Virus record (IMG/VR): IMGVR_UViG_3300029911_000001 | Location: 167,109 to 231,108 of that record | Length of the DNA: 64,000 nucleotides | Strand: one strand, 5' to 3' | Shown: positions 17,773-30,288 of the stretch, piece by piece | How the letters are laid out: each line of letters starts with the position of its first letter | Position numbering within the stretch: position 1 is the stretch's first letter | Notes under the pieces: generated by a model | The model's input: the letters and a program-made list of their open reading frames with translations, nothing else | What the model was told of the DNA's origin: nothing | The model's database searches: none | Translations under genes and position numbers: made by a program

Positions 17773-18187
17773 AGAGTACGAAGCAGTATTGAAAGAGTAC
17801 GACCTTCGACAGGCACGGGAAGAGGCTGAGGTCGAAGCTGAATACTACCGGATGGTCAAGCCGATGCTGGAGCAGTACGTCGGTGCTAAGGTATGTGACG
17901 CCACTATCTCTGCCATCACGTCCGATTGCATGAACCTTGCTCGTCACTTGTCGATGAGGTTCAGGGATGAGTACGAAATCCTTCTCGGCTACAACGAGGA
18001 AGACCGGTCTATCAATATCGGCTACAGGATCAAGCCTCGCATCTTCGAACCTAATCTTATCCGGGAGCCTTCTGGATTCACTCGGCTGCTTCCTAAGTAT
18101 GACGACATCACACTCCCGTCATCTTACGACGACCTATATCTAAAGTCACCGGAGCATGAGGAAGAGGAAGAGAGCGAAGAGGAATGA
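17759..18187 (+). CDS. Hypothetical protein
   Basis: Coupled ORF with acidic C-terminus. Confidence 0.65.
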
Positions 18188-18675
18188 CGATGGGGACGGG
18201 TAGACCTAAAAAAGAGAGCACAGAACTCACCTTCTCCTTAGAGAAGGAACAGGAGTTGATGCGTGCTCGGATGGCTGAAAAGTTTCCTTCTCCAAATACC
18301 GTCTCGTTGAGTGCTCAGTTGAACCATCTTGACGAGGTTCCTAGTAGAATCCCGACACCTGAGCCACTTAAAACTAAGGCGGTGCTCTACGCAAGAGTGT
18401 CTACTAAAACACAGAGTCTGGAGAACCAATTACTGGCTCTACGTAAATATGCTGCCCACAAAGGGTTATTGGTGGTAGGAGAATACTCAGACTCTATCCA
18501 CGGCTCTAATTCCATACGAGAGGGGCTAAACACCCTACTATTAGCTGGTAAATGTGGGGAGTTCGGTAAGGTTTTAGTTACAGCCTACGACCGAGTGGCA
18601 CGGGATACTAAACTGTTCCTTCACATCGTAGACATCCTCGGGGGGTGGGGAGTGAAACACCATGGAGTCAAATGA
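18184..18675 (+). CDS. Serine recombinase (resolvase) catalytic domain, C-terminally truncated
   Basis: AVLYARVSTKTQSLENQL, DRVAR; stops about 100 aa after the catalytic Ser. Confidence 0.8.
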   Translation: MTMGTGRPKKESTELTFSLEKEQELMRARMAEKFPSPNTVSLSAQLNHLDEVPSRIPTPEPLKTKAVLYARVSTKTQSLENQLLALRKYAAHKGLLVVGEYSDSIHGSNSIREGLNTLLLAGKCGEFGKVLVTAYDRVARDTKLFLHIVDILGGWGVKHHGVK

Positions 18676-19609
18676 AATGAATGTAACATATCAAAGGGTA
18701 GCAGACACCTTTTCAGGTGAAATCCACCGGCTCTTCTTATCTGAAGACAGTATGAAGGCGGAGTTCTCCAAACAGTTTTCTCATGTAGAGTTTGACAGAA
18801 CCATGCACGGTTCTACCCTTCTCTATAAACTCTTTCGTGACTGCTGGTATGCGACCGGCCCTGAGGTCAAGTGTGAGCCTACAGGCTACGACCGGTTGTT
18901 CGTCTGTCGCAAGCTCTACCATCTTCTCGATTACAATCTGTTCACTCAGGTTCTCCTCAACCTTCAGTCGTACGCTGGCATGTCTTACTACACTGAGGGT
19001 GCCATGAAGGAGATGGACGCTCTCAAGGAGTCGTGGCCGAAGGATGCGAAGCTGAACCCCTTCGAGCCCAAAGTCAAGATGGTGAAGAACGCTACGACCG
19101 ATGAGGAGAAGCGTTACAACAACCTGCTGAGCACGCTCAAGGGTCTGAAGATTATCTCGCAGTTCACTCCGCAGGTAAGCTTCCGCATCAGCCCCATGGG
19201 TTCGACGCCAGCGTTCGCCGACTCTCGCAACATCTCCATGATTGGAATCGGTGGCGACAAGTATCTCAAGACCTTGCCCAACCTCAGCCCCTTCTACATC
19301 CACTGGGCACCGGGCACGACGCCGGAGATGGCTAGGTTCAGCCTCACTGGGTTTACAGTGGAGGGTATCGCATACCCATTCATTTCGAAATCGGGGGGTG
19401 AGATTCTGCAAGAGGTTCTGTTCGCCCGGAAGATTATGGCGGAGGTCTTCGCTCATCATGACATCACTGCTGAAATGTGTGTGATGGTACCCCGCATGAA
19501 CTCCGTATTGATTGTTACGGACAAGGAAGGTATTCACTTGAAGGCTGCGTTCGACAAGCTGAAGGTACAGTACCCGATGCTTGAACTCGCAGAGGGAGGT
19601 CGTGTATGA
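18662..19609 (+). CDS. Hypothetical protein
   Basis: 315 aa ORF with phage-like codon usage. Confidence 0.75.
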   Translation: MESNEMNVTYQRVADTFSGEIHRLFLSEDSMKAEFSKQFSHVEFDRTMHGSTLLYKLFRDCWYATGPEVKCEPTGYDRLFVCRKLYHLLDYNLFTQVLLNLQSYAGMSYYTEGAMKEMDALKESWPKDAKLNPFEPKVKMVKNATTDEEKRYNNLLSTLKGLKIISQFTPQVSFRISPMGSTPAFADSRNISMIGIGGDKYLKTLPNLSPFYIHWAPGTTPEMARFSLTGFTVEGIAYPFISKSGGEILQEVLFARKIMAEVFAHHDITAEMCVMVPRMNSVLIVTDKEGIHLKAAFDKLKVQYPMLELAEGGRV

Positions 19610-19708
19610 TAAAGAAACTGAAGTTCTGCATCGGTTATGCGTGGGCTGCTTGCCGTATGACTTGGGACATGTTGAAGACCCTCGGCAAAGGCTAACGAAA
19701 GAAATTCA

Positions 19709-19745
19709 AAATAAGTGTTTACTTTCTCGAACTTCGTAGTATTAT
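19709..19745 (+). promoter_or_regulatory. Sigma70-like promoter of the Tyr/Leu tRNA block
   Basis: AAATAAGTG-TTTACT-N16-TATTAT; same layout at 24681 and 26609. Confidence 0.7.
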
Positions 19746-19815
19746 GTATAAGAAGTCGCTGCCGGAGCCATCTCTGCACACGCACATGGCCGGGGCAAGA
19801 CAAAAGGAATTGAAA

Positions 19816-19905
19816 ATGAACCGTCTCTCACACAACACGACCCTCGGACTAAGCTTGTATTACCTGCTTAGCAGCGGCCTCGTGCTGTCCGACAGACCCT
19901 CCTAA
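19816..19905 (+). CDS. Putative attenuator leader peptide (Tyr/Leu-rich, 29 aa)
   Basis: MNRLSHNTTLGLSLYYLLSSGLVLSDRPS; SD AAGGA upstream; tandem TAT-TAC, 8 Leu codons. Confidence 0.75.
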   Translation: MNRLSHNTTLGLSLYYLLSSGLVLSDRPS

Positions 19906-19960
19906 CAAGAGCAAGGTTCAAGGATACACGAAGCCGCCCGAAAGGGTGGCTTTTAGTTTT
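19874..19960 (+). promoter_or_regulatory. Antiterminator/terminator switch upstream of tRNA-Tyr
   Basis: Terminator AAGCCGCCC-GAAA-GGGTGGCTT plus U-rich tail (19931-19960); 19874-19884 GCGGCCTCGTG pairs 10/11 with 19927-19937 CACGAAGCCGC. Confidence 0.75.
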
Positions 19961-20047
19961 GGGCAGATGCGTGAGTGGCTAAAACGGGCTGGCTGTAACC
20001 CAGCTTCCCTAGTGGATTCGGAGGTTCAAATCCTCCTCTGCCCACCA
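19961..20047 (+). tRNA. tRNA-Tyr(GTA)
   Basis: GGGCAGA/TCTGCCC acceptor, CT-GTA-AC loop, GTTCAAATC, encoded CCA. Confidence 0.92.
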
Positions 20048-20058
20048 AAATTGAATAC

Positions 20059-20146
20059 GCAAGTAAGGCGACTATCGGTTGGTCGCACCGGGCTGTAAAC
20101 TCGTTGCCCTAAAAAGCCGCTGGGGGTTCGACTCCCTCTACTTGCA
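20059..20146 (+). tRNA. tRNA-Tyr(GTA), second divergent copy
   Basis: GCAAGTA/TACTTGC acceptor, CT-GTA-AA loop, GTTCGACTC; imperfect anticodon stem, no encoded CCA. Confidence 0.72.
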
Positions 20147-20202
20147 CTTTCGTGACTACCGACCTCTTTAAGTAGAGGTATCTCTTGGAGGTCGGTAGGT
20201 TC

Positions 20203-20817
20203 ATGACATTTTTCACAGTGTATCGAACACAGAATCTGGTGAACGGGAGGTACTACTTCGGCGTCCATAAGACCAAAGACCCCTACGATGGGTACCTTGG
20301 GTCGGGTAAGATTTTGAAACGCGCAATAATAAAGTACGGTGAGCCAGCGTTCATCAAGAATCTCTGCTTCATCTTTGACAATCCAGAGGAGGCTTTCGCT
20401 AAGGAGTTTGAACTAATTGAAACGTACCGGCAAGATTCGCTTTGCTACAACCTGAGACAAGGTGGAAGTGGGGGGTTTGATTGGATAAACCGGGAAGGCA
20501 AAGCAGATTATTCAAGGGCAGCGAAAATGTCTCACGGAAGTAAAAGTAAAAGAGACCCCAACCACTATATGAAGATGGTTGAAGGTAGAAGGAAAAAGGG
20601 GTACGGAGTTGCCCCCCAGTTCATAGGCATCTGGTCAGGACGTAAGCATACATCTGAAACCAAAGCCAAGATGGCGTTGGCAGCAAGCTTGAGAGTTGGT
20701 GAAAAGAACTCGCAACATGGGACTTGTTGGGTAACAGACGGTGTTACAAATATGAAGGTGAAGCAATCAGACCTGTCCACGTACCTTGTGGGTAGTTGGA
20801 AACGAGGAAGAGTATAA
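20203..20817 (+). CDS. GIY-YIG (Seg-like) homing endonuclease inside the tRNA cluster
   Basis: VYRTQNLVNGRYYFGVHKT...YLGSG...KYG, YNLRQGGSGG, KHTSETKAKM. Confidence 0.85.
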   Translation: MTFFTVYRTQNLVNGRYYFGVHKTKDPYDGYLGSGKILKRAIIKYGEPAFIKNLCFIFDNPEEAFAKEFELIETYRQDSLCYNLRQGGSGGFDWINREGKADYSRAAKMSHGSKSKRDPNHYMKMVEGRRKKGYGVAPQFIGIWSGRKHTSETKAKMALAASLRVGEKNSQHGTCWVTDGVTNMKVKQSDLSTYLVGSWKRGRV

Positions 20818-21035
20818 TGCAAGTCGTTCAAACGCTGTTGGTACAAGGGAACGCGCAACAGGTAGCTTGGCTCAACGTAGACCCGCGAGTGAAGAAGGGC
20901 TCCGTTGTTACGCTCAAGGACGAACCTGAGAGCGGTCAGTGGGAAGTAGCCGAGCAGTACATGAAGCAGGAAGCTTCGGACATCCAGCGTGGATGGGGCA
21001 ACGACCTTCCCAAGTCGCAGCGGACTGAGCGGTAA
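20817..21035 (+). CDS. Hypothetical protein
   Basis: TAATG-coupled ORF. Confidence 0.6.
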   Translation: MQVVQTLLVQGNAQQVAWLNVDPRVKKGSVVTLKDEPESGQWEVAEQYMKQEASDIQRGWGNDLPKSQRTER

Positions 21036-21071
21036 TTAGCTTTTCCTGCTGTACGGTTTTTAGCTTTTTAC

Positions 21072-21156
21072 GCCCGGATGGCGAAATTGGTAGACGCGGC
21101 AGACTTAGAATCTGTTGTCGCAAGACGTGGGGGTTCGAGTCCCCCTCCGGGCACCA
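21072..21156 (+). tRNA. tRNA-Leu(TAG)
   Basis: GCCCGGA/TCCGGGC, CT-TAG-AA loop, long variable arm, CCA. Confidence 0.95.
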
Positions 21157-21279
21157 AGTTTGAACTTACTATCGTGAGACGATTGCACGCAGAACCCCGT
21201 GTGATTGAGTGAAAGCTGTGGCAGGCGAATTGACGCTAAGGCGATAAGTAACTCAGTCGTTCAAAGTTTTACAAAGTAT

Positions 21280-21369
21280 GCGCGAGTGGTGGAATTGGAA
21301 GACACAGCAGACTCAGAATCTGCCGTCCCGAAAGGGCAACTACGAGTTCGACTCTCGTTTCGCGCACCA
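21280..21369 (+). tRNA. tRNA-Leu(CAG)
   Basis: GCGCGAG/TTCGCGC, CT-CAG-AA loop, long variable arm, CCA. Confidence 0.92.
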
Positions 21370-21382
21370 AAAGTTTAGCAAG

Positions 21383-21464
21383 GCCGATGTGGTGGAATGG
21401 CATACACAGGACACTCAAAGCGTCCCGCGAAAGCATACGAGTTCGACTCTCGTCATCGGCACCA
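21383..21464 (+). tRNA. tRNA-Leu(CAA)
   Basis: GCCGATG/CATCGGC, CT-CAA-AG loop, one anticodon-stem mismatch, CCA. Confidence 0.82.
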
Positions 21465-21476
21465 AAGTTTAGTATT

Positions 21477-21551
21477 GCTCCTATGCTGGAACTGGCATAC
21501 AGCTCTATTGTACATTGCGGGGCGGTGTGATTCGACCCCCATACGTGAGCC
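21477..21551 (+). pseudogene. Degenerate Leu-type tRNA
   Basis: Leu-like D-arm TGCTGGAACTGGCATACAG, TTCGA, partial acceptor pairing; no recognisable anticodon arm. Confidence 0.4.
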
Positions 21552-21723
21552 TTTTATCTCTCACGTCACATTTTCCCGAGAACGCAGTATGGCTTGGTAA
21601 GCTAGTTCCTAGTTGGCTCAAACAACCGGTACTAGCAAGAGACCTGTTCACATTGAAATAAATTGGCATCCGCATACACTGGCATTCGTGTTTTTGAACT
21701 TTCATACCCTAATTGAGGGTGTG

Positions 21724-22266
21724 ATGAGACAATATCGAAACAAGTACAGTAAGGAAAGTCTGGAGCCCATCGTTAGGGACAGCCTATCGGTAGCTGGGGT
21801 GATTGATAAACTCGGATTGAAACAGGCTGGGGGTAATCATAGGCACTTAAAGTTACTTTTCAAAAGGTTCGAAATTGATACTTCCCACTTTACAGGAAGT
21901 ATATGGAACCGGGGGCTCACCGCAGAGACAGACAAACGAGTAAACCGAGGGATTAGACAAAAGTACACAGACGATGAGGCTTTCTGTGAAAATTCACTTC
22001 TTGGGAGTTCTCAACTTAAGCGGAGATTACTTAGGATTGGATGGAAGTATTGTTGTTCTCGTTGTGGGATTTCAGACTGGTTAAGTGAAAAGATTGCACT
22101 ACATCTTGACCATATAAATGGTATCAATGATGACAATCGGCTTTGTAACCTTAGATTTCTTTGCCCAAATTGCCATCAACTAACAGGGACATGGGGTTCG
22201 AGAAACGCGGTCGTGGTGAAACGGCATACACACTACCTTGAGGTGGTAGCGGGGGCAACCCCATGA
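21724..22266 (+). CDS. HNH endonuclease
   Basis: CSRCG...LHLDHING...NRLCNLRFLCPNCH; stop codon lies inside tRNA-Leu(GAG). Confidence 0.88.
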   Translation: MRQYRNKYSKESLEPIVRDSLSVAGVIDKLGLKQAGGNHRHLKLLFKRFEIDTSHFTGSIWNRGLTAETDKRVNRGIRQKYTDDEAFCENSLLGSSQLKRRLLRIGWKYCCSRCGISDWLSEKIALHLDHINGINDDNRLCNLRFLCPNCHQLTGTWGSRNAVVVKRHTHYLEVVAGATP

Positions 22267-22292
22267 GAGTTCAACTCTCTCCGACCGCACCA
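22207..22292 (+). tRNA. tRNA-Leu(GAG)
   Basis: GCGGTCG/CGACCGC, TT-GAG-GT loop, long variable arm, CCA. Confidence 0.92.
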
Positions 22293-22311
22293 AAGTTAAG
22301 TATTATACAGG

Positions 22312-22638
22312 ATGAAGCTCCATTGGAGTCAAGTCCTAGTTCGAAATAGATGCAAGGCACGTGAACCAGCGGCTCGACTTCGAACAGCTATGTTGGAAGC
22401 GGGGATACCACACAAGTGTGAACGCTGTGGGTGTCCTCCTGAATGGCGAGGCAAGCTGCTCGTACTTCAGATTGACCACATAGACGGCGACACTCTCAAT
22501 AACGAGCCTGACAATGTTCGCTTCATCTGTCCGAACTGTCACTCGCAGACACTAAACTTCGGAGCCAAGAACCGCAACCGGCTCACTGAAGCAGGGTTCG
22601 ATGATTTGTATGCTTGGGGAGGTGAGGACTATGAGTAA
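22312..22638 (+). CDS. HNH endonuclease
   Basis: CERCG...LQIDHIDG...NVRFICPNCHS. Confidence 0.88.
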   Translation: MKLHWSQVLVRNRCKAREPAARLRTAMLEAGIPHKCERCGCPPEWRGKLLVLQIDHIDGDTLNNEPDNVRFICPNCHSQTLNFGAKNRNRLTEAGFDDLYAWGGEDYE

Positions 22639-22816
22639 AAGCATCGTGTGCATTCTCGGCATTAGCACCTATGGTGGATTCGAAGCAAAGGACGCTACGC
22701 TGGATAAGCAAGCGGCTCATGAATGGCTGCAAACGGAAACAGCACCGGACACCATGGCTGTCTTCAAGCGGGTTGATTGGAATCTGGTACGGTCAAGCTA
22801 GGGCAGACAAAGTAAT

Positions 22817-22903
22817 GCCGGGATGGTGGAATTGGCAGACACATCGGCCTCAAAAGCCGCCGTTCGCAAGGACATGAGGGTTCGACCCCCTCTCCCGGCA
22901 CCA
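22817..22903 (+). tRNA. tRNA-Leu(CAA), second copy
   Basis: GCCGGGA/TCCCGGC, CT-CAA-AA loop, CCA. Confidence 0.9.
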
Positions 22904-22954
22904 AACAAATATTTGCAATAAATCTGTCCGAAACCGTGTTCACTCCGGTATACT

Positions 22955-23164
22955 GTGGCTGGAGGCTTTTGGATGCCAGCGACAGACCCCACCAAACACA
23001 TCAACGTTACGTTGCCCCATGAGGGCATCGAGTTCCTGACACGGGTACAAGTTTACCTGCGGGACAGGTATGGTCGTGCGGCCAGTAAAGCAGCACGAGC
23101 CAACGTCTCCATCGCTTTGAACTCCATCCGCAAGGAACTTGAAACAAAGGAGCCACAGGCATGA
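22955..23164 (+). CDS. Hypothetical protein
   Basis: 69 aa ORF downstream of TATACT. Confidence 0.5.
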   Translation: MAGGFWMPATDPTKHINVTLPHEGIEFLTRVQVYLRDRYGRAASKAARANVSIALNSIRKELETKEPQA

Positions 23165-23414
23165 GAGTATCCGTCTATCCCATTCTAATCGAAGAAGGCA
23201 AGCCACCCGCGTTCAAAGAAATCAAGCTGCCCAAAGGGTCTCGCATCCTCGGTGGGGTTCAAGCGTAAGGAAGGTCTCGGCTACTACTGGTCTCGGAACC
23301 GTTGGTGGCGGTTCGGTGTTGACGACTACCCCCCAGCCTACCGGGTGTTGTGCTCGAACTGCAACATGAGCGCGTATCGAGGCAATGGTGTGTGTATTCA
23401 CCAGCGAGGCAAGA

Positions 23415-23912
23415 ATGAACCTACCAACTGAAATTCGTAGCTTCTCTGATGACTGGAGCTTCCTGTCTAACTTCTACCCGTGCAAGGTGGTGTTGGATGG
23501 TGTGGAGTATAGTTCGGTGGAGCACGCATATCAGGCGGCGAAGACGCTGAACCTCAAGGAGCGGGAGAAGTTCCTGTACGCTGGCGTCACAGCCGGTCGT
23601 GCGAAGCGGATGGGCGATGCCATCAACAAGTCTGGCAAGCGTCGTGCGGACTGGCTGGAGGTCAACAAGCCTATCATGCTCGACCTGCTCAAGCAGAAAT
23701 TCTATCCGTCGATTTTACGTCGGAAGCTGCTCTGTACGTTCTCTGCGATTCTGATTGAGGGGAACTACTGGCACGACACGTGGTGGGGCGTGTGTGAAGG
23801 CACGTGCAAGGAGCACGGTCCCCATGAACCATATGGGGATAATATCCTAGGTCTGCAACTGATGGAGGTTAGGGCCTACTATGGAACAGGTGAAGGGTGT
23901 CTCAACCGTTAG
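23415..23912 (+). CDS. NADAR (YbiA-like) family protein
   Basis: FLSNFYPC, YSSVEHAYQAAK, LKQKF, LIEGNYWHDTWWG, NILGLQLMEVR. Confidence 0.92.
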   Translation: MNLPTEIRSFSDDWSFLSNFYPCKVVLDGVEYSSVEHAYQAAKTLNLKEREKFLYAGVTAGRAKRMGDAINKSGKRRADWLEVNKPIMLDLLKQKFYPSILRRKLLCTFSAILIEGNYWHDTWWGVCEGTCKEHGPHEPYGDNILGLQLMEVRAYYGTGEGCLNR

Positions 23913-24127
23913 GCTGCTACGCTCCTCCGCGACCTGCGAGGCACAGCGACTGGAGTTCCAGTTCCAAGGGCATTGATTGCGGCTTCCAGTCGGTCTATCT
24001 CAACCGCCAGTTCGTTTCGCAGCGTCTTGATGCCTCTGTCTTTCATGCCGGATAAAGCCTCGTGAGAAACGCGGAGGCGAACGATTTCAGCCGTAAGGTT
24101 GTCACGCAGGGTATTGATGTCCATCAC
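23909..24127 (-). CDS. Small basic protein, paralogue of 24243-24536
   Basis: DINTLRDNLTAEIVRL helix, Arg-rich tail. Confidence 0.65.
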   Translation of the reverse strand: MMDINTLRDNLTAEIVRLRVSHEALSGMKDRGIKTLRNELAVEIDRLEAAINALGTGTPVAVPRRSRRSVAA

Positions 24128-24242
24128 TACTCCTTTTACAATATCCAGTATACCTAACCATAGGTCAATGTAAAGTAAAATTTACCCCCATGAGAAAACG
24201 GGATGGAGCCGGATTCTCATGGGGGTTGGATCGTTCGTTGGT

Positions 24243-24536
24243 CTACGCCGCTTTAGACTGGGCTGCATTAACTTCCACAGTGGCGACAGCGGCCTTCTGC
24301 TTAGCCCAACGGGCCTTCTGCGAAGCAGAGATGCGTGCCCGAAGCTCGGGAGTCATCTCCCGACGGACACGGTGGATACCCTTCTTCTCACCCTTAGCAA
24401 TCATCGTCCGGGTCGTCTTGCGGTGCTTCACAGGGGCATGGTTGGGGACTTCGCTGGAGTTGGCGAGGGCATCGTAAGCAGCCTGAAGCCTTGCGATGTC
24501 GGTTGCGATTTCTGCACGTAACGATTCGATATTCAT
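24243..24536 (-). CDS. Putative nucleoid-associated small basic protein
   Basis: MNIESLRAEIATDIARLQAAYDAL...REMTPELRARISASQKARWAKQK; SD AGGAG. Confidence 0.7.
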   Translation of the reverse strand: MNIESLRAEIATDIARLQAAYDALANSSEVPNHAPVKHRKTTRTMIAKGEKKGIHRVRREMTPELRARISASQKARWAKQKAAVATVEVNAAQSKAA

Positions 24537-24680
24537 TGAGGTTTCTCCTGTTTTTCTATACGTTCTCCCTTTTGCGTATGGGTCTGTAACCGAGGGCTGT
24601 GGTGTGTTCAACCACACTCCCAGTGACTGTGTAGATACTTGGTGTACCACTAAGGTTGCCCCCTCCCGTTGTTTTTTGAA

Positions 24681-24716
24681 AAATAGTGTTGCATTTTTCG
24701 GACTATCGGGTATTAT
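24681..24716 (+). promoter_or_regulatory. Sigma70-like promoter of the Pro tRNA block
   Basis: AAATAGTG-TTGCAT-N16-TATTAT; ATG 6 nt downstream (leaderless). Confidence 0.75.
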
Positions 24717-24722
24717 GTAGAT

Positions 24723-24788
24723 ATGAAGTTCACGAGTCCAAACCCGTCGTTCCCACCGTGCCCTACCCTGCACGGGCCTGACCTCTAG
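24723..24788 (+). CDS. Putative Pro-rich leader peptide (21 aa)
   Basis: MKFTSPNPSFPPCPTLHGPDL; 6 Pro codons (CCA, CCG, CCA, CCG, CCT, CCT). Confidence 0.65.
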   Translation: MKFTSPNPSFPPCPTLHGPDL

Positions 24789-24941
24789 CGAGTTCAGCGT
24801 CCCGTGCGGCCTCGCCGGGATGTGAATGTGATTTTGATTTGGAGTCTAGCAAGTTCCCCGATAACACGCCCGAACCGTTCTCGCGAAAAGCGTACGGTTC
24901 GGCTCTCCTTCAAAAGACCATCCCGGTCACTATTGCTTTCT

Positions 24942-25018
24942 CGGAGAGTGGCCAAGATGGAAAGGCTCTGGTTTCGGGAACCAGAAATTCGTGAGTTCGA
25001 ACCTCACCTCTCCGACCA
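24942..25018 (+). tRNA. tRNA-Pro(CGG)
   Basis: CGGAGAG/CTCTCCG, CTGGT-TT-CGG-GA-ACCAG, CCA. Confidence 0.93.
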
Positions 25019-25030
25019 AACTTTTACCCT

Positions 25031-25654
25031 TCAAAGGAGGATCACTCCTTTATCCAACTCATCATGGTGGTTCTTACACAAGGCGATGAGGTTGCAAGGG
25101 TCATTGATTTCACCGACCAACGCAGTTGAAGGGAAAGCTCTGATGGGTTTGATGTGGCAACAGTCCACATGGAAGGTATACCCACATACTTGACACATAC
25201 GGGCTCTAACCTTGAAGAGAACCCCTCTAGCGTGTTCTCGGATTCGTTCTAATGGGCACGCCTTCTTGGTTCTTAGCGGGAGCAATGACATTGGGATGTA
25301 ATTACACTCGGGGCATCGAGTGGTAGAACGGTGTCTGTTTACCTTGAAGAAGAGGGTTCCACAAGAAGTACAGTTACGGGGTTTTGGTTTGTTTCGCGGG
25401 AATGTCGTTCGTGCCATATTGTACTTGGCACCACACGATTGGTTGCAGAACTTTTTTCTCTTGACTTGTTGAAACTTTGAGCGAGTCATCTCTTCAAGAG
25501 GTATCAAGATAGCAGTATCACACTGTAGGCAACGGGTTGGATTTTCATTGTACCCTTCCATTCGTTGCTGGGCTCTTTGTCGGTTCAACACGTTTGCATT
25601 TTTACCGGCAGCTTTGATTTGAGCCAATCTGGTTGAGCTTAGTTTGTTTTTCAT
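25031..25654 (-). CDS. HNH endonuclease between the two tRNA-Pro genes
   Basis: CQVCG...DCCHIKP...NLIALCKNHH; N-terminal Cys clusters. Confidence 0.85.
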   Translation of the reverse strand: MKNKLSSTRLAQIKAAGKNANVLNRQRAQQRMEGYNENPTRCLQCDTAILIPLEEMTRSKFQQVKRKKFCNQSCGAKYNMARTTFPRNKPKPRNCTSCGTLFFKVNRHRSTTRCPECNYIPMSLLPLRTKKACPLERIREHARGVLFKVRARMCQVCGYTFHVDCCHIKPIRAFPSTALVGEINDPCNLIALCKNHHDELDKGVILL

Positions 25655-25693
25655 TTTTCAACTCCCTGTTTACTGATTAGGTAGTTGAAAAAT

Positions 25694-25767
25694 CGGGGTG
25701 TAGCTGGAAGGTCAAGCCCGTGTTTTGGGAACACGAGACGAGGTTTCGATTACCTCCACCCCGACCA
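25694..25767 (+). tRNA. tRNA-Pro(TGG)
   Basis: CGGGGTG/CACCCCG, CGTGT-TT-TGG-GA-ACACG, CCA. Confidence 0.9.
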
Positions 25768-25780
25768 ATTTTGAACTATA

Positions 25781-25824
25781 TCACCGGAAGCAGCGGAGAG
25801 ATTCGAATCCTATCACCCCGACCA
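25781..25824 (+). pseudogene. Orphan tRNA 3' fragment
   Basis: ATTCGAATCC...CACCCCGACCA duplicates the 3' end of tRNA-Pro(TGG). Confidence 0.65.
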
Positions 25825-25836
25825 AGTTTGAAGTAT

Positions 25837-26000
25837 GCCAGCGACGACCGCTGAGCCTTTATAGCCCCTATCCGAGGGGTGTTGGGCTCATGTCACGCCG
25901 ATACCGTGCTCATCATGAGAGGGATACTCTATGAGTGTTGCGACGAACGGTGCCGACGACGCAAGTCCGGGGCAACTTCGGCCCCGCTAAGGGGCCGGAC
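25837..26000 (+). ncRNA. Candidate structured ncRNA
   Basis: Several GC-rich helices: CTCAT/ATGAG with AGAG/CTCT, GTCCGG/CCGGAC, GGCCCC-GCTAA-GGGGCC. Confidence 0.45.
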
Positions 26001-26125
26001 AAGTTTTGAACTTTGGTAGTATTATATTTAGTGGAGCCGGACTGCGGTAGTCCCACAGGACTGTACGACGTGAAGCCCTCCACACATCACACGGTCGTCG
26101 TCCGGGGTGTTAGGGGAGAAGTATC

Positions 26126-26593
26126 ATGAATTTTAAGGTGACTCATTGGCATCTCGCTAAGGGACGCGGCGATGGCGATAACACCGAAGTCGTAGTCCGT
26201 CTGGAAGAGTCATCGTGGTTCTGGCACTTCGCTGAGTTCATCGGTGAGCACGTATTCTTCACCATCTGCGATTGGTGCCACAAGGTTCCCCTCCCTAAGT
26301 TCGTATGCAACTGGGAACGCAACTGGGGCGGTGACAAGGAAGACGGCGTACATAAGCTGGAAGACTGGTATGGTGCCGACCTTGGTTGTCTCTGGCACGT
26401 CTACGTAGAGTCCCCCGTCCTTCAGTGGGTGTGGAAGCATAAGTTCATTGAACAGGCCACAGAGTTCCGTATGACCCTTGCCGAGGCCCGTGAAAAGTTC
26501 AAAGGCACACAGGCTTACAAGCTGGAGTGGATTGAAGAAGATGTCAAGCGTGACGCTGCATACGCTGCGGAACACCCCGAAGATAACGATTAG
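26126..26593 (+). CDS. Trp-rich hypothetical protein
   Basis: 155 aa, SD GGGGAG. Confidence 0.7.
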   Translation: MNFKVTHWHLAKGRGDGDNTEVVVRLEESSWFWHFAEFIGEHVFFTICDWCHKVPLPKFVCNWERNWGGDKEDGVHKLEDWYGADLGCLWHVYVESPVLQWVWKHKFIEQATEFRMTLAEAREKFKGTQAYKLEWIEEDVKRDAAYAAEHPEDND

Positions 26594-26608
26594 TCAGAAA
26601 TAATGCAA

Positions 26609-26645
26609 AAATAAGTGTTGCAAAGTTTTCTGACTTTGGTATTAT
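26609..26645 (+). promoter_or_regulatory. Sigma70-like promoter directly upstream of tRNA-Met
   Basis: AAATAAGTG-TTGCAA-N16-TATTAT. Confidence 0.75.
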
Positions 26646-26649
26646 TAGT

Positions 26650-26730
<81 letters not shown>

Positions 26731-26750
26731 AGAAGTAAAGTAAGGGTACA

Positions 26751-26849
26751 ATGGCAACTCAGGTTCTTCGCTTCAAGTGCGGCTTCTGCGATAAGGAAAT
26801 GCGTTCCCAAGGGCAACGCACCAAGCACGCAAAGGTCTGCACCAAATGA
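26751..26849 (+). CDS. 32-aa C2HC zinc-finger microprotein
   Basis: MATQVLRFKCGFCDKEMRSQGQRTKHAKVCTK = C-x2-C-x12-H-x3-C. Confidence 0.65.
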   Translation: MATQVLRFKCGFCDKEMRSQGQRTKHAKVCTK

Positions 26850-27012
26850 CCGTGGTAAATTGAAACTACTCTTCCGGGAGTAGGGTGGCTCAAATCCGCC
26901 CCATGGTCTATAACGCTGCACTAACAGAAGGACGACCCGATAGACTCACTGTTTTATAAGGAGTGTTCATGGGAAACATCGCTATGTCCTCACTCTTGCC
27001 CACTCGGGCAAC

Positions 27013-27047
27013 CTGAGTGAGTCCCTGAGTGAGTCCCTGAGTGAGTC
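27013..27047 (+). repeat. 12-bp tandem repeat x3
   Basis: CTGAGTGAGTCC x3, last copy imperfect. Confidence 0.92.
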
Positions 27048-27086
27048 TAAAGGGTCGCCGGTCTACCCGAATAATGACGGCTAAAA

Positions 27087-27248
27087 ATGAAACCACAAGT
27101 AAAGCTTACACGTCGTGAACGCCGGAAGTTGAACAAGCCGAAGAACAATGGCTGCAAGTATGTTTGCTTGACTTGCAACACACCATTCACCTTGAGCACT
27201 GCAATGGATGAGAAGCACTACTGCTCATCTAAGTGCCAACCGAAGTAA
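27087..27248 (+). CDS. 53-aa Cys-rich microprotein
   Basis: Basic N-terminus, CLTC...YCSSKC. Confidence 0.6.
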   Translation: MKPQVKLTRRERRKLNKPKNNGCKYVCLTCNTPFTLSTAMDEKHYCSSKCQPK

Positions 27249-27369
27249 GTTCCCGTTGAATCGGGCTTGGTACTGAAAACCAGCGAAGCAGGGTTGGTCT
27301 CTATGGGTGCAGTCTAGCGCATAGAGTTGGGAGAGGTCGTCGCGACGGCCAATCCCACCCCAGAGTTTT

Positions 27370-27426
27370 GGCGGGATAGAGGAGTTGGTTCCTTGACGGG
27401 CTCATAACCCGTAGACGGTCGGTTCG
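27370..27426 (+). pseudogene. 5' 57 nt of a tRNA-Met(CAT) ending at the T-loop
   Basis: GGCGGGA, D-arm, ACGGG-CT-CAT-AA-CCCGT, GTCGGTTCG; no matching 3' strand found nearby. Confidence 0.72.
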
Positions 27427-27842
27427 GAGGACATTCGGGAGGCTACTAGTGGCTCCCACCCGGAGGTCTTGTTGGCGAGAAGCCTCCCCCTCCGGTTTAT
27501 TTTGAGTGGTGCCGTTGGTCGCCTAGCGTCCGACATCCATGGGACAACATGGTATCGAGTCGCCGATGCGATTCGAGGCAACCTGTAGATGACGAAGAAG
27601 GTTATCCTGTGGTGTAGCCGGTAGGCGTTACAGGCAAGTCCCTTCGTCGGTATCATCCGGCACAATTTTTGTTGGGGTCTCACTACGAAGAGCGGCGGCG
27701 TAAGAGGGTGTGAGGCGAGAACCGAAGCATCGACCGTGCAGCGTACCGGATGAAACAGCCGGACTATAGTGGTGGCTTACAACAGTAATGTTGTCGGTGC
27801 GAGTGCTCATCCAAAGCCATGGAACCCCAAACAAAATAATTA

Positions 27843-27870
27843 TTGCAACTGTCTCAGAGTCGTGTATACT
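27843..27870 (+). promoter_or_regulatory. Sigma70-like promoter
   Basis: TTGCAA-N16-TATACT. Confidence 0.65.
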
Positions 27871-28056
27871 ACGTGTACGTTCTTGGATGTAAACCAAGGG
27901 AGTGGGCTCAGTTTCTTGCATCTGTAAATGCAAGTGGAGGTCGGGGCGGGTTGCCCGGTCAAGTTTCCAGCTTTAGAAGAAAGCTGGTGGTGGAGGGTGT
28001 CACGGGAAACCGTGACGCCCCCGTAGTTCAAATCTATCTTAGGAGAACAACGTCCA

Positions 28057-28254
28057 ATGGCAACAATCCTCGAATTCAACGGCTGTCCCAAATGGCGTGT
28101 AGTGAAAGAAGGGGAAGCAACCTTCCTGCACTGCCCGACGACCCAGACTCGCATCCCTGTCACTCTTGGCGAACTCCCCGAAGGTGCAAGCTTCGAGGAA
28201 GGTGATGAAAACCTCCCGACCGGTACCGAACTCGAAATCGCAGTCACGGTCTAA
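28057..28254 (+). CDS. Hypothetical protein
   Basis: 65 aa, SD AGGAG, biased codon usage. Confidence 0.7.
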   Translation: MATILEFNGCPKWRVVKEGEATFLHCPTTQTRIPVTLGELPEGASFEEGDENLPTGTELEIAVTV

Positions 28255-28261
28255 CCGAGAA

Positions 28262-28391
28262 ACGCTTGTAGCTCAGAATTACTCTGCGAGGCGGACGAGG
28301 AAGGTACCGACGACTTCGGCTAGACAGAGGAAGCCTAGAGCACCGGGGTTCTAATCCCGGAGGTCGCAGGAGAGGCCCTGCCAAGCGTACC
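28262..28391 (+). ncRNA. tRNA-like RNA with a ~60-nt insertion in the D-loop
   Basis: ACGCTTG/CAAGCGT acceptor, GCTC/GAGC D-stem, CCGGG/CCCGG anticodon stem, GCAGG/CCTGC T-stem. Confidence 0.65.
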
Positions 28392-28397
28392 TTTTAT

Positions 28398-28509
28398 GAG
28401 GGAATGGATAGACTCTGACTTCTCATCTGACATAAGACCAGTCAGGCAGCGTAACTCAGATGAGGCATCGGCCAGAGGAACGTCCGTGAAATCCCGCACT
28501 CCCTCTCCA
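28398..28509 (+). ncRNA. CCA-terminated tRNA-like RNA of unknown class
   Basis: GAGGGA/TCCCTC-T-CCA ends; internal CTCATCTGA/TCAGATGAG helix. Confidence 0.5.
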
Positions 28510-28563
28510 ATTTGTTTGCAACTTTTTCCAACTATCTGCGTCTAAGTAAGAGAACACATCCCC

Positions 28564-28614
28564 ATGAACCCCATCTACCCAACTCCCGGCGCACGATTTA
28601 CTGAGACCCTCTAA
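28564..28614 (+). CDS. Putative leader peptide (16 aa) upstream of tRNA-Phe
   Basis: MNPIYPTPGARFTETL; stop codon in the loop of ACCCTC-TAAGC-GAGGGT. Confidence 0.4.
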   Translation: MNPIYPTPGARFTETL

Positions 28615-28637
28615 GCGAGGGTGTTTCGTATTTCTGC

Positions 28638-28713
28638 GGCCTTGTAGCTCAGATGGTAGAGCACTACGCTGAAGACGTAGGTGCCGCGGTCTCGAAAGCC
28701 GCCAAGGCCACCA
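28638..28713 (+). tRNA. tRNA-Phe(GAA)
   Basis: GGCCTTG/CAAGGCC, CTACG-CT-GAA-GA-CGTAG, CCA; atypical T-loop. Confidence 0.88.
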
Positions 28714-29542
28714 ACTTTTTAATTCTTTTCTTCACAGCACTCCCCGACACCCCTAATAGTCTCCCCGTTGCTTCAAATCCAGTAGTGTCCACTTGTGCTT
28801 GGAGCAGGGCTAAGCTCGGCCATTCAATCTTGTCTTTATGGTTGAGTTTGGCTGCACAGGACTGGCACCGTTTATACCCGGACGTGATGGTGACTCCACA
28901 ACTGCACTGATTTGTCGGTCGTGCCCCCATTAGCCTAATAAAGTCTTTTCCATACTTAGCTGTCACATAAGTCAGGGTCGGCTCCATCTCTTTCTTTCCC
29001 AGTACAGACAGAACCCCACCAAACTGCGCTATTTTGGCTCGATTGCGGTTGTCCATCCACCCCTTCACTTCGATGTAGGCTCCTGTAGGGAGAATAAAGT
29101 CAGGGTAGAACTTGTGTGTCCTGCCTTCGAACGAGTAAGTCAACCCTAGTGTGTTCCGACTGAACCCCACTCCGTGGTCGAGGTTGTAGATGACCCACGC
29201 AAGCTCCCATGAAGAATCGCACCAGTAGCCTTTGTACCAGCCCTTCTTGCCCCGACCAGACCCAGCCCTTATCCCTCCGGTGTTAGGGTTCCATCGTTTA
29301 GGGCCACCATACTTCGCCTTCCTTTCATCCGGGCTCAGGGTATCAATAAATCTGCGGACAGAAATCGCGACGGCGACTGAGTTCTTTCTCACTCGGTCAT
29401 CTGTGTCCTTTGTCAGGCCACGGTTCCACGCGGCCCCACAGTGGTTGATAGGGGCTCCCTCGTGGCTGTATCGAATGTGATTCCTCAGGCCAAACTTGTG
29501 ACAAGATTTCCCGCACTGAGGGCAGTTGATATGTGTATCCAT
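28664..29542 (-). CDS. PD-(D/E)xK endonuclease with zinc fingers (homing-type)
   Basis: CDSSWELAW, FYPDF...YIEVKGW; N-terminal CPQC...H; C-terminal HTH-like segment. Confidence 0.75.
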   Translation of the reverse strand: MDTHINCPQCGKSCHKFGLRNHIRYSHEGAPINHCGAAWNRGLTKDTDDRVRKNSVAVAISVRRFIDTLSPDERKAKYGGPKRWNPNTGGIRAGSGRGKKGWYKGYWCDSSWELAWVIYNLDHGVGFSRNTLGLTYSFEGRTHKFYPDFILPTGAYIEVKGWMDNRNRAKIAQFGGVLSVLGKKEMEPTLTYVTAKYGKDFIRLMGARPTNQCSCGVTITSGYKRCQSCAAKLNHKDKIEWPSLALLQAQVDTTGFEATGRLLGVSGSAVKKRIKKLVALAAFETAAPTSSA

Positions 29543-29598
29543 ACCATGGACTGCGTAGTCCGAAAATCAAACCAGTGCAAAGACCAGTATTAACTACC

Positions 29599-30288
29599 AT
29601 GGCAGACGAAGTAACCCCACCTGAACCAGACTTCATCAGACTAAAGTTCGAGAAGGATAGCCTTCACAAGCTATACCAGACCGGCGTGTCTCGTGAGATA
29701 AACCCCAAGCGGTGGGAACGTGTTCGAACTGAGATACGATTCGAAGATGTAGTGTCTGACCTCTCCGGTCATAGCGGCTCCGCCATCCGCTGCCCCTTTC
29801 ATGGCTCTGACTCCACCCCATCGTTCTGGATATATCGCGGCTCTAATGATGGCTGGTGCTTCGGCTGTCCTCCGAAAGAACAATACTACGACCAAGTACG
29901 CTTCGCGGCGAAGTACCTCGACATCAGCCGCCCTCAAGCCCTCCGCTGGCTTGAAAAGAAGTGGGACTTGCCAGCGATGCCTGATGAGCCTGATGAAGAG
30001 GACGAGGCTGAAGAAGTACAGCTTCGCTTCGAGGATTTGCAGGAGCCCTTCATACTCCGTGCCATCAAGCAAGTGCGAGAGTTCAAGGATGTTGAACTGG
30101 CAGAGGATTACATTCACTACTACTTCAAAGCCGTGGGCAATTTGAAGATGTCGGACATGGCTAAGAAGGAAGGTGAGCCGGAAGACGCTGCCGAGTTTGA
30201 AGTGAAGGCTGCTACCACACTAGCTCGGGTGTTAGGCAAAGCGGAAATAGCAAGCATTTTCGCTGTCAAACAATCACGAAGGCAGTAA
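29599..30288 (+). CDS. Stand-alone primase CHC2 zinc-binding domain protein
   Basis: CPFHGSDSTPSF...GWCFGC; no TOPRIM domain. Confidence 0.78.
   Translation: MADEVTPPEPDFIRLKFEKDSLHKLYQTGVSREINPKRWERVRTEIRFEDVVSDLSGHSGSAIRCPFHGSDSTPSFWIYRGSNDGWCFGCPPKEQYYDQVRFAAKYLDISRPQALRWLEKKWDLPAMPDEPDEEDEAEEVQLRFEDLQEPFILRAIKQVREFKDVELAEDYIHYYFKAVGNLKMSDMAKKEGEPEDAAEFEVKAATTLARVLGKAEIASIFAVKQSRRQ

Follow-up and report, generated by a model that had tools for sequence, protein, structure and literature searches.

A conserved leader reading frame within alternative RNA helices at the head of proline-tRNA genes in huge soil and peat phages

A family of huge soil and peat phages begins its proline-tRNA gene cluster with a short conserved ORF embedded in an RNA that is predicted to fold in two ways, suggesting that translation of this ORF may decide whether the first proline tRNA of the cluster, present here only as a decayed copy, can fold. 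The element was examined in a 64,000-nucleotide window (positions 167,109 to 231,108 of the IMG/VR record IMGVR_UViG_3300029911_000001; coordinates below refer to this window), and 18 distinct versions were identified in related huge-phage contigs, one per locus (loci are designated by L followed by a number). In 17 of them the first recognisable tRNA downstream is tRNA-Pro, whereas in L057 a tRNA-Pro follows about 450 nt later. Classical intrinsic termination is not supported as the output, since no helix is followed by a consistent U tract.

Features of the leader and its occurrence in related phages

The initial annotation had described, upstream of two tRNA-Pro genes, a promoter followed 6 nt later by a leaderless, proline-rich ORF and a chain of mutually exclusive helices, and its observation is confirmed, as every one of these features is present in the sequence (Table 1). 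This includes the helix pairs 24756-61/24770-75, 24770-76/24801-07, 24800-04/24816-20 and 24815-22/24919-26, as well as six Pro codons in the order CCA, CCG, CCA, CCG, CCT, CCT. Its interpretation, namely a leader-peptide switch responding to proline and built on the same logic as a Tyr/Leu leader in the same phage, is only partly supported, as detailed below.

Table 1. Coordinates of the leader element and the adjacent genes, with the observations that bear on each.
Position (strand)	Feature	Observations
24676-24716 (+)	Promoter-like motif: A-rich upstream part, AGTGTTGCA (-35 region; TTGCAT 24689-24694), spacer containing GACT, GGTATTAT (-10 box; TATTAT 24711-24716, 16 nt after TTGCAT)	70%-identical copy at 19705-19748, before the Tyr leader; conserved in 11 relatives, always with 6 nt between -10 box and ATG; promoter function inferred
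24723-24788 (+)	Leader ORF of 21 codons, MKFTSPNPSFPPCPTLHGPDL, probably starting at the first base of the transcript (leaderless)	Intact in 18 of 18 homologues; all indels are multiples of 3
24756-24775 (+)	H1 (helix 1:2): s1 CCGUGC 24756-61 pairs with s2 GCACGG 24770-75; CCUA in the loop	Compensatory changes in L033, L057 and the second clade; predicted stability -9 to -16 kcal/mol wherever parsed correctly
24768-24809 (+)	H2 (helix 2:3): s2 24770-76 pairs with s3 24801-07, plus a variable apex; stop codon UAG 24786-88 in the apical loop	Apex z = -1.4 to -3.5 against shuffles in 10 of 10 versions; stop in the loop in all versions
24799-24821 (+)	H3 (helix 3:4): 24799-24808 pairs with 24813-24821, loop GCCU; excludes both H2 and H4	Compensatory changes in L051, L059, L058 and the second clade; in L055 and L099 its 3' arm is the first 4-6 nt of tRNA-Pro(UGG)
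24814-24927 (+)	H4 domain, a decayed tRNA-Pro(UGG): helix 24814-22/24919-27 closing a 96-nt interior with a hairpin (24870-78/24894-902) and a T-arm remnant (24896-24908)	5' end CCGGGATGT identical to the L055 tRNA, 3' end near-identical; compensated changes in L059; not called a tRNA by ARAGORN or, at E <= 10, by the Rfam tRNA model
24928-24941 (+)	Single-stranded tail between H4 and the first real tRNA	No U tract; tails in relatives are 7-56 nt and not conserved
24942-25018 (+)	tRNA-Pro(CGG)	Rfam tRNA, 54.6 bits
25031-25654 (-)	HNH endonuclease gene inserted between the two tRNA-Pro genes	PF13391, E = 1.6e-8; in relatives the CGG and UGG genes lie 7-47 nt apart
25694-25767 (+)	tRNA-Pro(UGG)	Rfam tRNA, 54.5 bits

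The -35 hexamer matches only 3 of 6 consensus positions, so that a generic sigma-70 scan missed the site; however, the longer motif AGTGTTGCA-N15-GGTATTAT occurs twice in the window against 0.13 expected. The ORF ranks 2nd of 386 small ATG ORFs in the window for Pro content (binomial P of 3e-4 at the 5% Pro usage of the phage), and the leader folds better than shuffled sequence (z = -2.7).

The decisive evidence is nevertheless comparative. Among 137 other loci, covariance-model hits coincide exactly with loci that have a downstream tRNA-Pro. A looser pattern scan of IMG/VR returned 117 loci, of which only 8 were real by the covariance model, and five of 17 metagenome hits were chance matches. 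A pattern scan of 185,579 GTDB species genomes gave three hits, all of them chance matches inside coding DNA, while megablast and blastn searches with the region and with a second-clade leader against 50,697 GenBank phage records found no match. Searches of Rfam returned no family for the leader. The nearest isolate, Tunturiibacter phage Tunturi_5, has no tRNA array in the two stretches examined, upstream of its DNA polymerase and in the last 40 kb of the record. Several of the contigs are close relatives, and the counts given here therefore overstate the number of independent events.

Conservation of the ORF and of the mutually exclusive helices

All 18 versions keep an ORF of 21-25 codons, whereas the other two frames carry stops. 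Indels of -9, +9, +3 and +6 nt, as well as H2 5' arms of 9-18 nt, all preserve the frame, and the stop codon follows the H2 loop as the arm length changes, lying 12-22 nt before s3 in the ten versions measured. The ORF is predicted to be leaderless in the clade of the window, whereas in several members of the second clade it is led by a Shine-Dalgarno (SD)-like sequence instead (AAGGA/AGGAG in L055 and L087). The short ORF thus appears to have been selected to be read, although its translation is inferred from sequence alone. A comparison of synonymous and non-synonymous changes between frames was clear over codons 1-20 in 7 sequences (63/120 against 35/154 and 33/157), but nearly flat over codons 1-13 in 13 sequences (0.14 against 0.11 in the other two frames), and we therefore do not claim selection on the peptide.

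The proline signal is weaker than initially proposed. CCA at codon 6 and CCG at codon 12 are present in 18 of 18 versions (L033 swaps to CCA), and CCU at codon 14-16 in 17 of 18. Only these three Pro codons are conserved; relatives carry 3-6, never as a run, and the alternating CCA/CCG pattern, which the initial annotation had matched to the codons read by the downstream tRNAs, is specific to the lineage of the window. CGA (Arg) codons and UGC are conserved just as strongly, CGA5 and CGA11 being found in most versions, and CGA and CCA are the rarest Arg and Pro codons in the long ORFs of the phage. Moreover, the three conserved Pro codons lie in or beside pairing segments, so that RNA constraints alone could fix them. 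The Tyr/Leu leader is also conserved, but it is built differently, with an SD-led ORF followed by a true terminator, and therefore does not repeat the same design.

The helices H1, H2 and H3 form in all versions that were parsed correctly and are maintained with compensatory changes. On an alignment fitted to H1+H3, 98.9% of cells are paired and 7 of 15 pairs have changed on both sides; 0 of 500 shuffles scored as high, and about 40% of cells are paired when the partner is slid. On the same alignment, which was not fitted to it, the H2 core is 98.3% paired, with 4 of 500 shuffles as high. In L059, changes in s4 are compensated in both s3 and s5, the 3' strand of H4. H2 (-22 to -32 kcal/mol) is close in predicted stability to H1+H3 (-20 to -31 kcal/mol), and the minimum free energy (MFE) fold of growing window transcripts passes from H1 to H2, then to H1+H3 and finally to H2+H4. 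An additional pairing, H0, between ORF codons 6-9 and the tRNA D arm or its remnant is convincing in L055, L099, L019, L051 and L105 but absent in others, and is retained as a possibility only.

In L055/L096 and L099/L076, the 3' arm of H3 is nt 1-6 of an ARAGORN-called tRNA-Pro(UGG), and the H4 arms of the window match the acceptor strands of that tRNA. Since only the acceptor strands and a T-loop remnant align with the L055 tRNA-Pro(UGG), we consider the H4 domain a decayed tRNA rather than a tRNA. In L099, the free MFE structure sequesters the 5' half of the tRNA, and masking s1 gives H2 plus the cloverleaf; in L055, however, masking s1 did not give a clean fold of this kind. In the window itself, forcing H3 leaves the cloverleaf of the real tRNA-Pro(CGG) and its single-stranded leader unchanged.

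A proposed ribosome-operated switch and its alternatives

We tentatively interpret the element as a ribosome-operated RNA switch at the 5' end of the tRNA-Pro transcription unit, with the topology of a trp-type attenuator (helices 1:2, 2:3 and 3:4) but no terminator. In this view, the ORF begins at or near the transcript start, runs through s1 and ends in the apical loop of H2, while s3 can pair with either s2 (H2) or s4 (H3). In the presumed ancestral arrangement, still seen in L055 and L099, s4 would be the RNase P site plus the first 4-6 nt of tRNA-Pro(UGG), and H3 would keep that tRNA from forming its acceptor stem. In the window, where the first tRNA has decayed and its acceptor stem survives as H4 (s4:s5), the choice would be between H1+H3 and H2+H4. 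A ribosome dwelling on codons 9-14 (CGA/CCA, CCG, UGC, CCU) would cover s1 and leave s2 free, so that H2 forms and s4 is released (the ON state), whereas a ribosome running on to the stop would cover s2, and H3 would form as soon as s4 is made (the OFF state). Scarce Pro-tRNA would therefore favour tRNA-Pro maturation, the switch gating folding of the tRNA precursor or its processing by RNase P. What the analysis demonstrates is the conservation of the ORF, of all helices and of the tRNA-Pro context, together with the identity of s4 with a tRNA 5' end; that the ORF is translated, that proline is sensed (through Pro-tRNA or EF-P) and what the switch changes in the window's own arrangement, be it processing, stability or Rho access, are all inferred. 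The mechanism is plausible in that a designed hairpin sequestering a pre-tRNA 5' leader blocks RNase P in vitro and in E. coli (PMC7897497).

It is possible, although less likely than not, that the element is a natural, ribosome-actuated switch on tRNA maturation, in which the time spent decoding CGA-CCN/Pro codons decides whether the adjacent tRNA-Pro 5' strand is released to form its acceptor stem and be cut by RNase P, closing a direct feedback loop from Pro-tRNA supply to tRNA-Pro production inside a phage. Sister modules, small ORFs with a stop codon in a hairpin loop, may sit before other tRNA groups in the same genomes. Phage tRNA genes are usually treated as passive cargo, and in the literature we could search no natural cis-regulator of tRNA gene output that reads translation has been described. 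If the element works as proposed, it would extend leader-peptide attenuation from amino-acid biosynthesis to the tRNA itself, add to the attenuator repertoire a new output, the sequestration of a tRNA acceptor strand instead of the formation of a terminator, a principle that until now had only been engineered (PMC7897497), and suggest that huge phages adjust their tRNA supply to the state of the host's translation apparatus. The element is also compact, its 18 natural variants differ informatively, and it can be tested directly in vitro.

Among the alternatives, all of which we regard as unlikely, the least unlikely is the same switch with Rho-dependent termination or RNA decay as its output, the C-rich 3' half of the H4 domain being exposed to Rho or an RNase when H4 is open. 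G-free runs of 27-36 nt occur in the H4 domains of L027, L046 and L033, the Pro-codon leaders mgtL and mgtP act without intrinsic terminators (PMC3641672), and this model would give the window-type arrangement the same ON/OFF logic as L055 and L099. However, the rut-like bias of C over G is weak (24% against 19.5% overall), the longest G-free run in the window is 13 nt, and leaders of the L055 and L099 type have no such region. Almost equally unlikely is a structured 5' leader and tRNA relic independent of translation, whose helices would serve folding or processing of the precursor and whose ORF would be a by-product of C-rich pairing segments. Conservation is indeed at the nucleotide level, with little synonymous excess, the Pro, Cys, His and Gly codons coincide with s1 and s2, and H0-type pairing in L055 and L099 is an RNA-only constraint; yet this reading is opposed by the 18 open frames, the in-frame indels, the position of the stop and the retention of the ORF while its start context changes from leaderless to SD-like.

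Classical leader-peptide transcription attenuation, in which stalling at Pro codons would govern a downstream intrinsic terminator, is more doubtful still. The topology and the conserved ORF fit this model, and U-rich runs follow H4 in L105 and L058 (UUUUG) and in L019 (UUGUUUU). Nevertheless, a terminator scan found nothing between 24723 and 24941, where the initial annotation had itself noted a weak U tract after the third hairpin; the tails after H3 and H4 are not conserved and mostly lack U runs; H4 encloses 30-96 nt, unlike a terminator hairpin; and L055 and L099 have no H4 at all, the tRNA starting inside H3. If H4 were the terminator, the logic would be inverted, a stalled ribosome causing termination and low Pro-tRNA reducing tRNA-Pro output. 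Equally doubtful is a role for the peptide itself, either as a nascent-chain arrest peptide (RP...FRPCP motif) that stalls the ribosome regardless of tRNA supply or as a free proline-rich micropeptide. Proline-rich stretches stall ribosomes (PMC5299641), and R5-P6 and F10-R11-P12-C13 recur across both clades; however, the amino acids change freely where H1 covaries (T/M/N/I at codon 14; V/M/L at the paired codon), the conserved residues always use the same codon, and the C-terminal residues are variable. Direct sensing of tRNA-Pro in the manner of a T-box, with the CCUA of the H1 loop pairing with the anticodon loop to stabilise H1+H3, is very unlikely, since, although CCUA is invariant in 17 of 18 versions, including its third base, and a codon followed by a purine resembles a T-box specifier, no T-box hit appears in Rfam (at E <= 1 over 18000-30000 or at E <= 10 over 24700-24945), there is neither a Stem I platform nor a UGGN bulge, and the features of the ORF are left unexplained.

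Comparison with known regulatory systems

Like the ribosome-mediated transcription attenuators of amino-acid operons (trpL, hisL, leuL, pheL, thrL), the phage element has a short leader ORF overlapping segment 1, three mutually exclusive helices, a stop codon placed so that a terminating ribosome would cover segment 2, and codons of interest in or just before segment 1. It differs from them in that its 3:4 helix has no U tract and, in relatives, overlaps a tRNA 5' end, in that the genes presumably controlled are tRNA genes rather than biosynthetic genes, in having three conserved Pro codons instead of a run of regulatory codons, and in residing in a phage. T-box riboswitches are leader RNAs whose alternative folds respond to the state of one tRNA species, as is proposed here, but they bind the tRNA directly, have no ORF, control aaRS and amino-acid genes, and use a terminator or SD sequestration; no T-box signature is present here.

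The mgtL and mgtP leaders of the Salmonella mgtA and mgtCBR operons (PMC3641672; PMC5299641) likewise comprise a short ORF with Pro codons and alternative stem-loops; the translation rate of their ORFs (Pro-tRNA supply, EF-P) selects between these without a classical terminator, as is proposed for the phage element. They show no sequence relationship to the phage element, their ORFs are not leaderless, their targets are Mg2+ transporter and virulence genes, and their output is transcription elongation or translation of an mRNA rather than a tRNA precursor. Leaderless poly-Cys short ORFs that act as cysteine-responsive attenuators in mycobacteria (bioRxiv 10.1101/834739) share the probable position of a leaderless short ORF at the 5' end of a polycistronic transcript and, as is proposed here, its use as a sensor of the supply of one amino acid or tRNA, but carry consecutive Cys codons and control protein-coding operons, with no tRNA involved. 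Finally, in a synthetic RNase P riboswitch (PMC7897497), a hairpin that sequesters the 5' leader and cleavage site of a pre-tRNA blocks RNase P and an alternative fold releases it. That device is engineered and driven by a ligand through a theophylline aptamer, and its authors state that natural control of cleavage-site accessibility had not been demonstrated, whereas in the phage element the proposed actuator is a ribosome.

Genomic context of the proline leader

The window is part of a huge phage, and the same sequence occurs in JGI and ENA contigs from peat and soil of up to 431 kb. It carries a DNA polymerase, a portal gene and a UvsX-like recombinase gene, as well as an array of 11 tRNA genes interspersed with HNH/NUMOD endonuclease genes. 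The nearest cultured relative is Tunturiibacter phage Tunturi_5 (52.7% identity for the portal and 46.7% for the DNA polymerase), from which we infer that the host is probably an acidobacterium.

All features described in the initial annotation, namely a promoter-like site, a Pro-rich leader ORF and a chain of mutually exclusive helices upstream of two tRNA-Pro genes, were confirmed in the sequence at the stated coordinates. Its interpretation of these features as a leader-peptide switch is only partly supported, as detailed below. The -35 hexamer is weak and the site was missed by a generic promoter scan. Nevertheless, the longer motif AGTGTTGCA-N15-GGTATTAT recurs once more in the window, against 0.13 occurrences expected, and a 70%-identical copy precedes the Tyr leader. 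The second copy ends only 4 nt before the 5' end of tRNA-Met, so that a normal start site would fall at or inside the mature tRNA; this would make it a leaderless tRNA transcript, but could also mean that the motif is not a simple promoter. The 21-codon ORF contains six Pro codons and ranks 2nd of 386 small ORFs in the window for Pro content. The 219-nt leader folds at -72.1 kcal/mol (z = -2.7) into a structure containing a hairpin (H2), with the stop codon of the ORF in its apical loop, and a long-range helix (H4).

Small ORFs also precede other tRNA genes of the array. The Tyr/Leu leader ORF (MNRLSHNTTLGLSLYYLLSSGLVLSDRPS) is conserved in the related contigs L019, L030 and L033 and possesses an SD and a genuine intrinsic terminator, followed by a U tract, ahead of the tRNA-Tyr/Leu genes; in L030 and in a further relative, L027, a 53-codon ORF lies between the terminator and tRNA-Tyr. 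A 16-codon ORF (MNPIYPTPGARFTETL) ends with its TAA in the loop of a hairpin, 15 nt before tRNA-Phe, and L030 has a homologous 16-codon ORF, again with the stop in a hairpin loop before its tRNA-Phe. This layout matches that of the Pro leader, but the ORF has only one Phe codon. In addition, an HNH endonuclease gene separates tRNA-Pro(CGG) from tRNA-Pro(UGG), which lie 7-47 nt apart in relatives, and tRNA-Pro(UGG) is followed by a 3' tRNA fragment (T arm, acceptor strand and CCA). A hit to the wcaG RNA motif (RF01761) scored 42.2 bits, just above the gathering score of 42.

Coordinates of features in the window and in related contigs (L numbers)
Feature	Sequence	Position	Strand
tRNA array	window	19961-28713	
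Tyr/Leu leader region	window	19705-19960	
Tyr/Leu leader ORF	window	19816-19905	
Tyr/Leu intrinsic terminator hairpin	window	19930-19953	
T-loop remnant	window	24896-24908	
HNH endonuclease gene	window	25031-25654	-
3' tRNA fragment	window	25795-25826	
Second copy of the promoter-like motif	window	26614-26645	
Motif copy and approach to tRNA-Met	window	26614-26650	
wcaG RNA motif hit	window	27907-28002	
Leader region before tRNA-Phe	window	28564-28637	
Hairpin before tRNA-Phe	window	28606-28622	
tRNA-Pro with long variable arm	L025	2361-2540	
tRNA-Pro with long variable arm	L055	10104-10310	
tRNA-Pro with long variable arm	L019	about 2788-2971	-
tRNA-Pro with long variable arm	L030	about 7161-7250	
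tRNA-like gene with internal insertion	L057	10229-10422	
Release-factor-like gene	L027	9071-9658	
Release-factor-like gene	L058	9820-10398	
Release-factor-like gene	L033	7750-8238	
Release-factor-like gene	L019	1569-1901	

Distribution of the leader and conservation of its reading frame

Since all 20 or more copies of the window's own phage are identical in this region, diversity was sought in more distant phages, which were reached through the divergently transcribed neighbouring gene, through the nearby NADAR gene and through DNA patterns drawn from conserved blocks. A covariance model built from eight leaders finds exactly one copy per locus in 18 distinct loci, several of which lie on closely related contigs, and finds nothing in 129 unrelated loci fetched by the loose pattern scans. 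In 17 of the 18 the first recognisable tRNA downstream is tRNA-Pro, either UGG or CGG and often followed by GGG, while in L057 a tRNA-Pro follows about 450 nt later. No copy was found in GTDB bacterial genomes or GenBank phage records. Some relatives encode tRNA-Pro(UGG) and tRNA-Pro(CGG) genes of 86-93 nt with a long variable arm, which is unusual for tRNA-Pro; the copies in L019 and L030 are missed by ARAGORN and were read by eye from their anticodon loops. L057 also possesses a tRNA-like gene of about 190 nt (acceptor GCCCUUG/CAAGGGC plus ACCA, and a good T arm) with a large internal insertion, the 3' part of which gives a weak hit to the tmRNA model (E = 0.0012). Release-factor-like genes (PCRF/RF-1 domains) lie next to the tRNA-Pro array in several relatives, but none was seen in the corresponding part of the window.

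All 18 leaders keep an ATG-initiated ORF of 21-25 codons. In the window's clade the ATG lies exactly 6 nt after the -10 box, which fits a leaderless mRNA, whereas in the second clade the promoter is further upstream, and L055 and L087 have AAGGA/AGGAG about 11 nt before the ATG. Every length difference inside the ORF is a multiple of three and, although the 5' arm of H2 varies from 9 to 18 nt, the in-frame stop always falls in the H2 apical loop, 12-22 nt before segment s3 (the 3' strand of H2) in the ten leaders measured. The other two frames contain stops. Conservation is at the level of codons rather than of the peptide: CCA6 and CCG12 are invariant, CCU14-16 and UGC13 are each found in 17 of 18 leaders, and CGA5 and CGA11 in most, while codons 2-4 and 7-9 vary freely. 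CGA and CCA are the rarest Arg and Pro codons in the long ORFs of the phage. We conclude that reading of the ORF through to the H2 loop is selected, and that the peptide itself probably is not.

Alternative helices and the tRNA acceptor strand

Three helices that share strands, H1 (s1:s2), H2 (s2:s3) and H3 (s3:s4), can form in every leader that was parsed correctly, and H2 (-22 to -32 kcal/mol) is roughly equal in predicted stability to H1+H3, although these energies ignore tRNA tertiary structure. On the alignment derived from the covariance model, H1+H3 are 98.9% paired, with 7 of 15 pairs changed on both sides; none of 500 shuffles reached the observed values, and about 40% of cells pair when the partner is slid. 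This alignment was fitted to that structure. However, the H2 core, tested on the same alignment and therefore not fitted, is 98.3% paired, with 4 of 500 shuffles as high, and the variable H2 apex is more stable than shuffled sequence in 10 of 10 versions. Individual relatives are informative in this respect. L033 changes both strands of H1, L051 changes both strands of the inner H3 stem, and L059 changes s4 (CCGGGA to CUAGGA) and is compensated in both s3 and s5, the latter being the partner of s4 in H4. In the second clade, the codon inserted after UGC covaries with the codon it pairs with (ACG/GUG, AUG/AUG, AAC/UUG), so that amino acids change while H1 is kept. Growing window transcripts switch their MFE from H1 to H2 to H1+H3 to H2+H4. 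Helices that exclude one another are thus all maintained, which is what a switch predicts.

No helix is followed by a conserved U tract. In L055/L096 and L099/L076 the 3' arm of H3 consists of a few leader bases plus nucleotides 1-4 to 1-6 of a tRNA-Pro(UGG) called by ARAGORN, and in those phages the proposed switch can only act on the folding or 5' processing of that tRNA. In their ribosome-free MFE, the 5' strand and D arm of the tRNA are held by the leader; masking s1 yields H2 plus a cloverleaf in L099, whereas the result for L055 is less clean. The window's s4 and s5 match the acceptor strands of the L055 tRNA, with CCGGGATGT at the 5' end and CCATCCCG at the 3' end, and a T-loop remnant is also present. 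H4 is therefore the acceptor stem of a decayed tRNA-Pro, although no tRNA detector calls it one, and the compensated changes in L059 suggest that it is still under selection. In the window, forcing H3 abolishes H4 but leaves the fold of the real tRNA-Pro(CGG) untouched.

Inferred mechanism and comparison with known systems

The geometry of the element matches the trp paradigm. With ribosome footprints of the usual size, a ribosome with codon 12 or 14 in its A site would cover s1 and leave s2 essentially free, whereas a ribosome at the stop would cover s2, with s3 lying just outside its footprint. Slow decoding at the CGA-CCN/Pro codons should therefore favour H2 and release s4, while fast translation, or none, should favour H3. 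This would provide homeostatic control of tRNA-Pro and is the model that we prefer, albeit tentatively. The comparative data show that the ORF, the helices and the tRNA-Pro context are conserved and that s4 coincides with a tRNA 5' end in some relatives; translation of the ORF, the sensing of proline and the output in the window's own arrangement are inferred from sequence alone.

The output step is plausible, since a designed hairpin that sequesters a pre-tRNA leader does block RNase P (PMC7897497). Searches of the literature found no natural leader ORF in front of tRNA genes and no natural switch on RNase P access. As proposed, the element would work like a leader-peptide attenuator and like the Pro-codon leaders mgtL and mgtP (PMC3641672), but it fails the terminator criterion and has a different target. 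Leaderless sensor ORFs, for their part, are known in mycobacteria (10.1101/834739).
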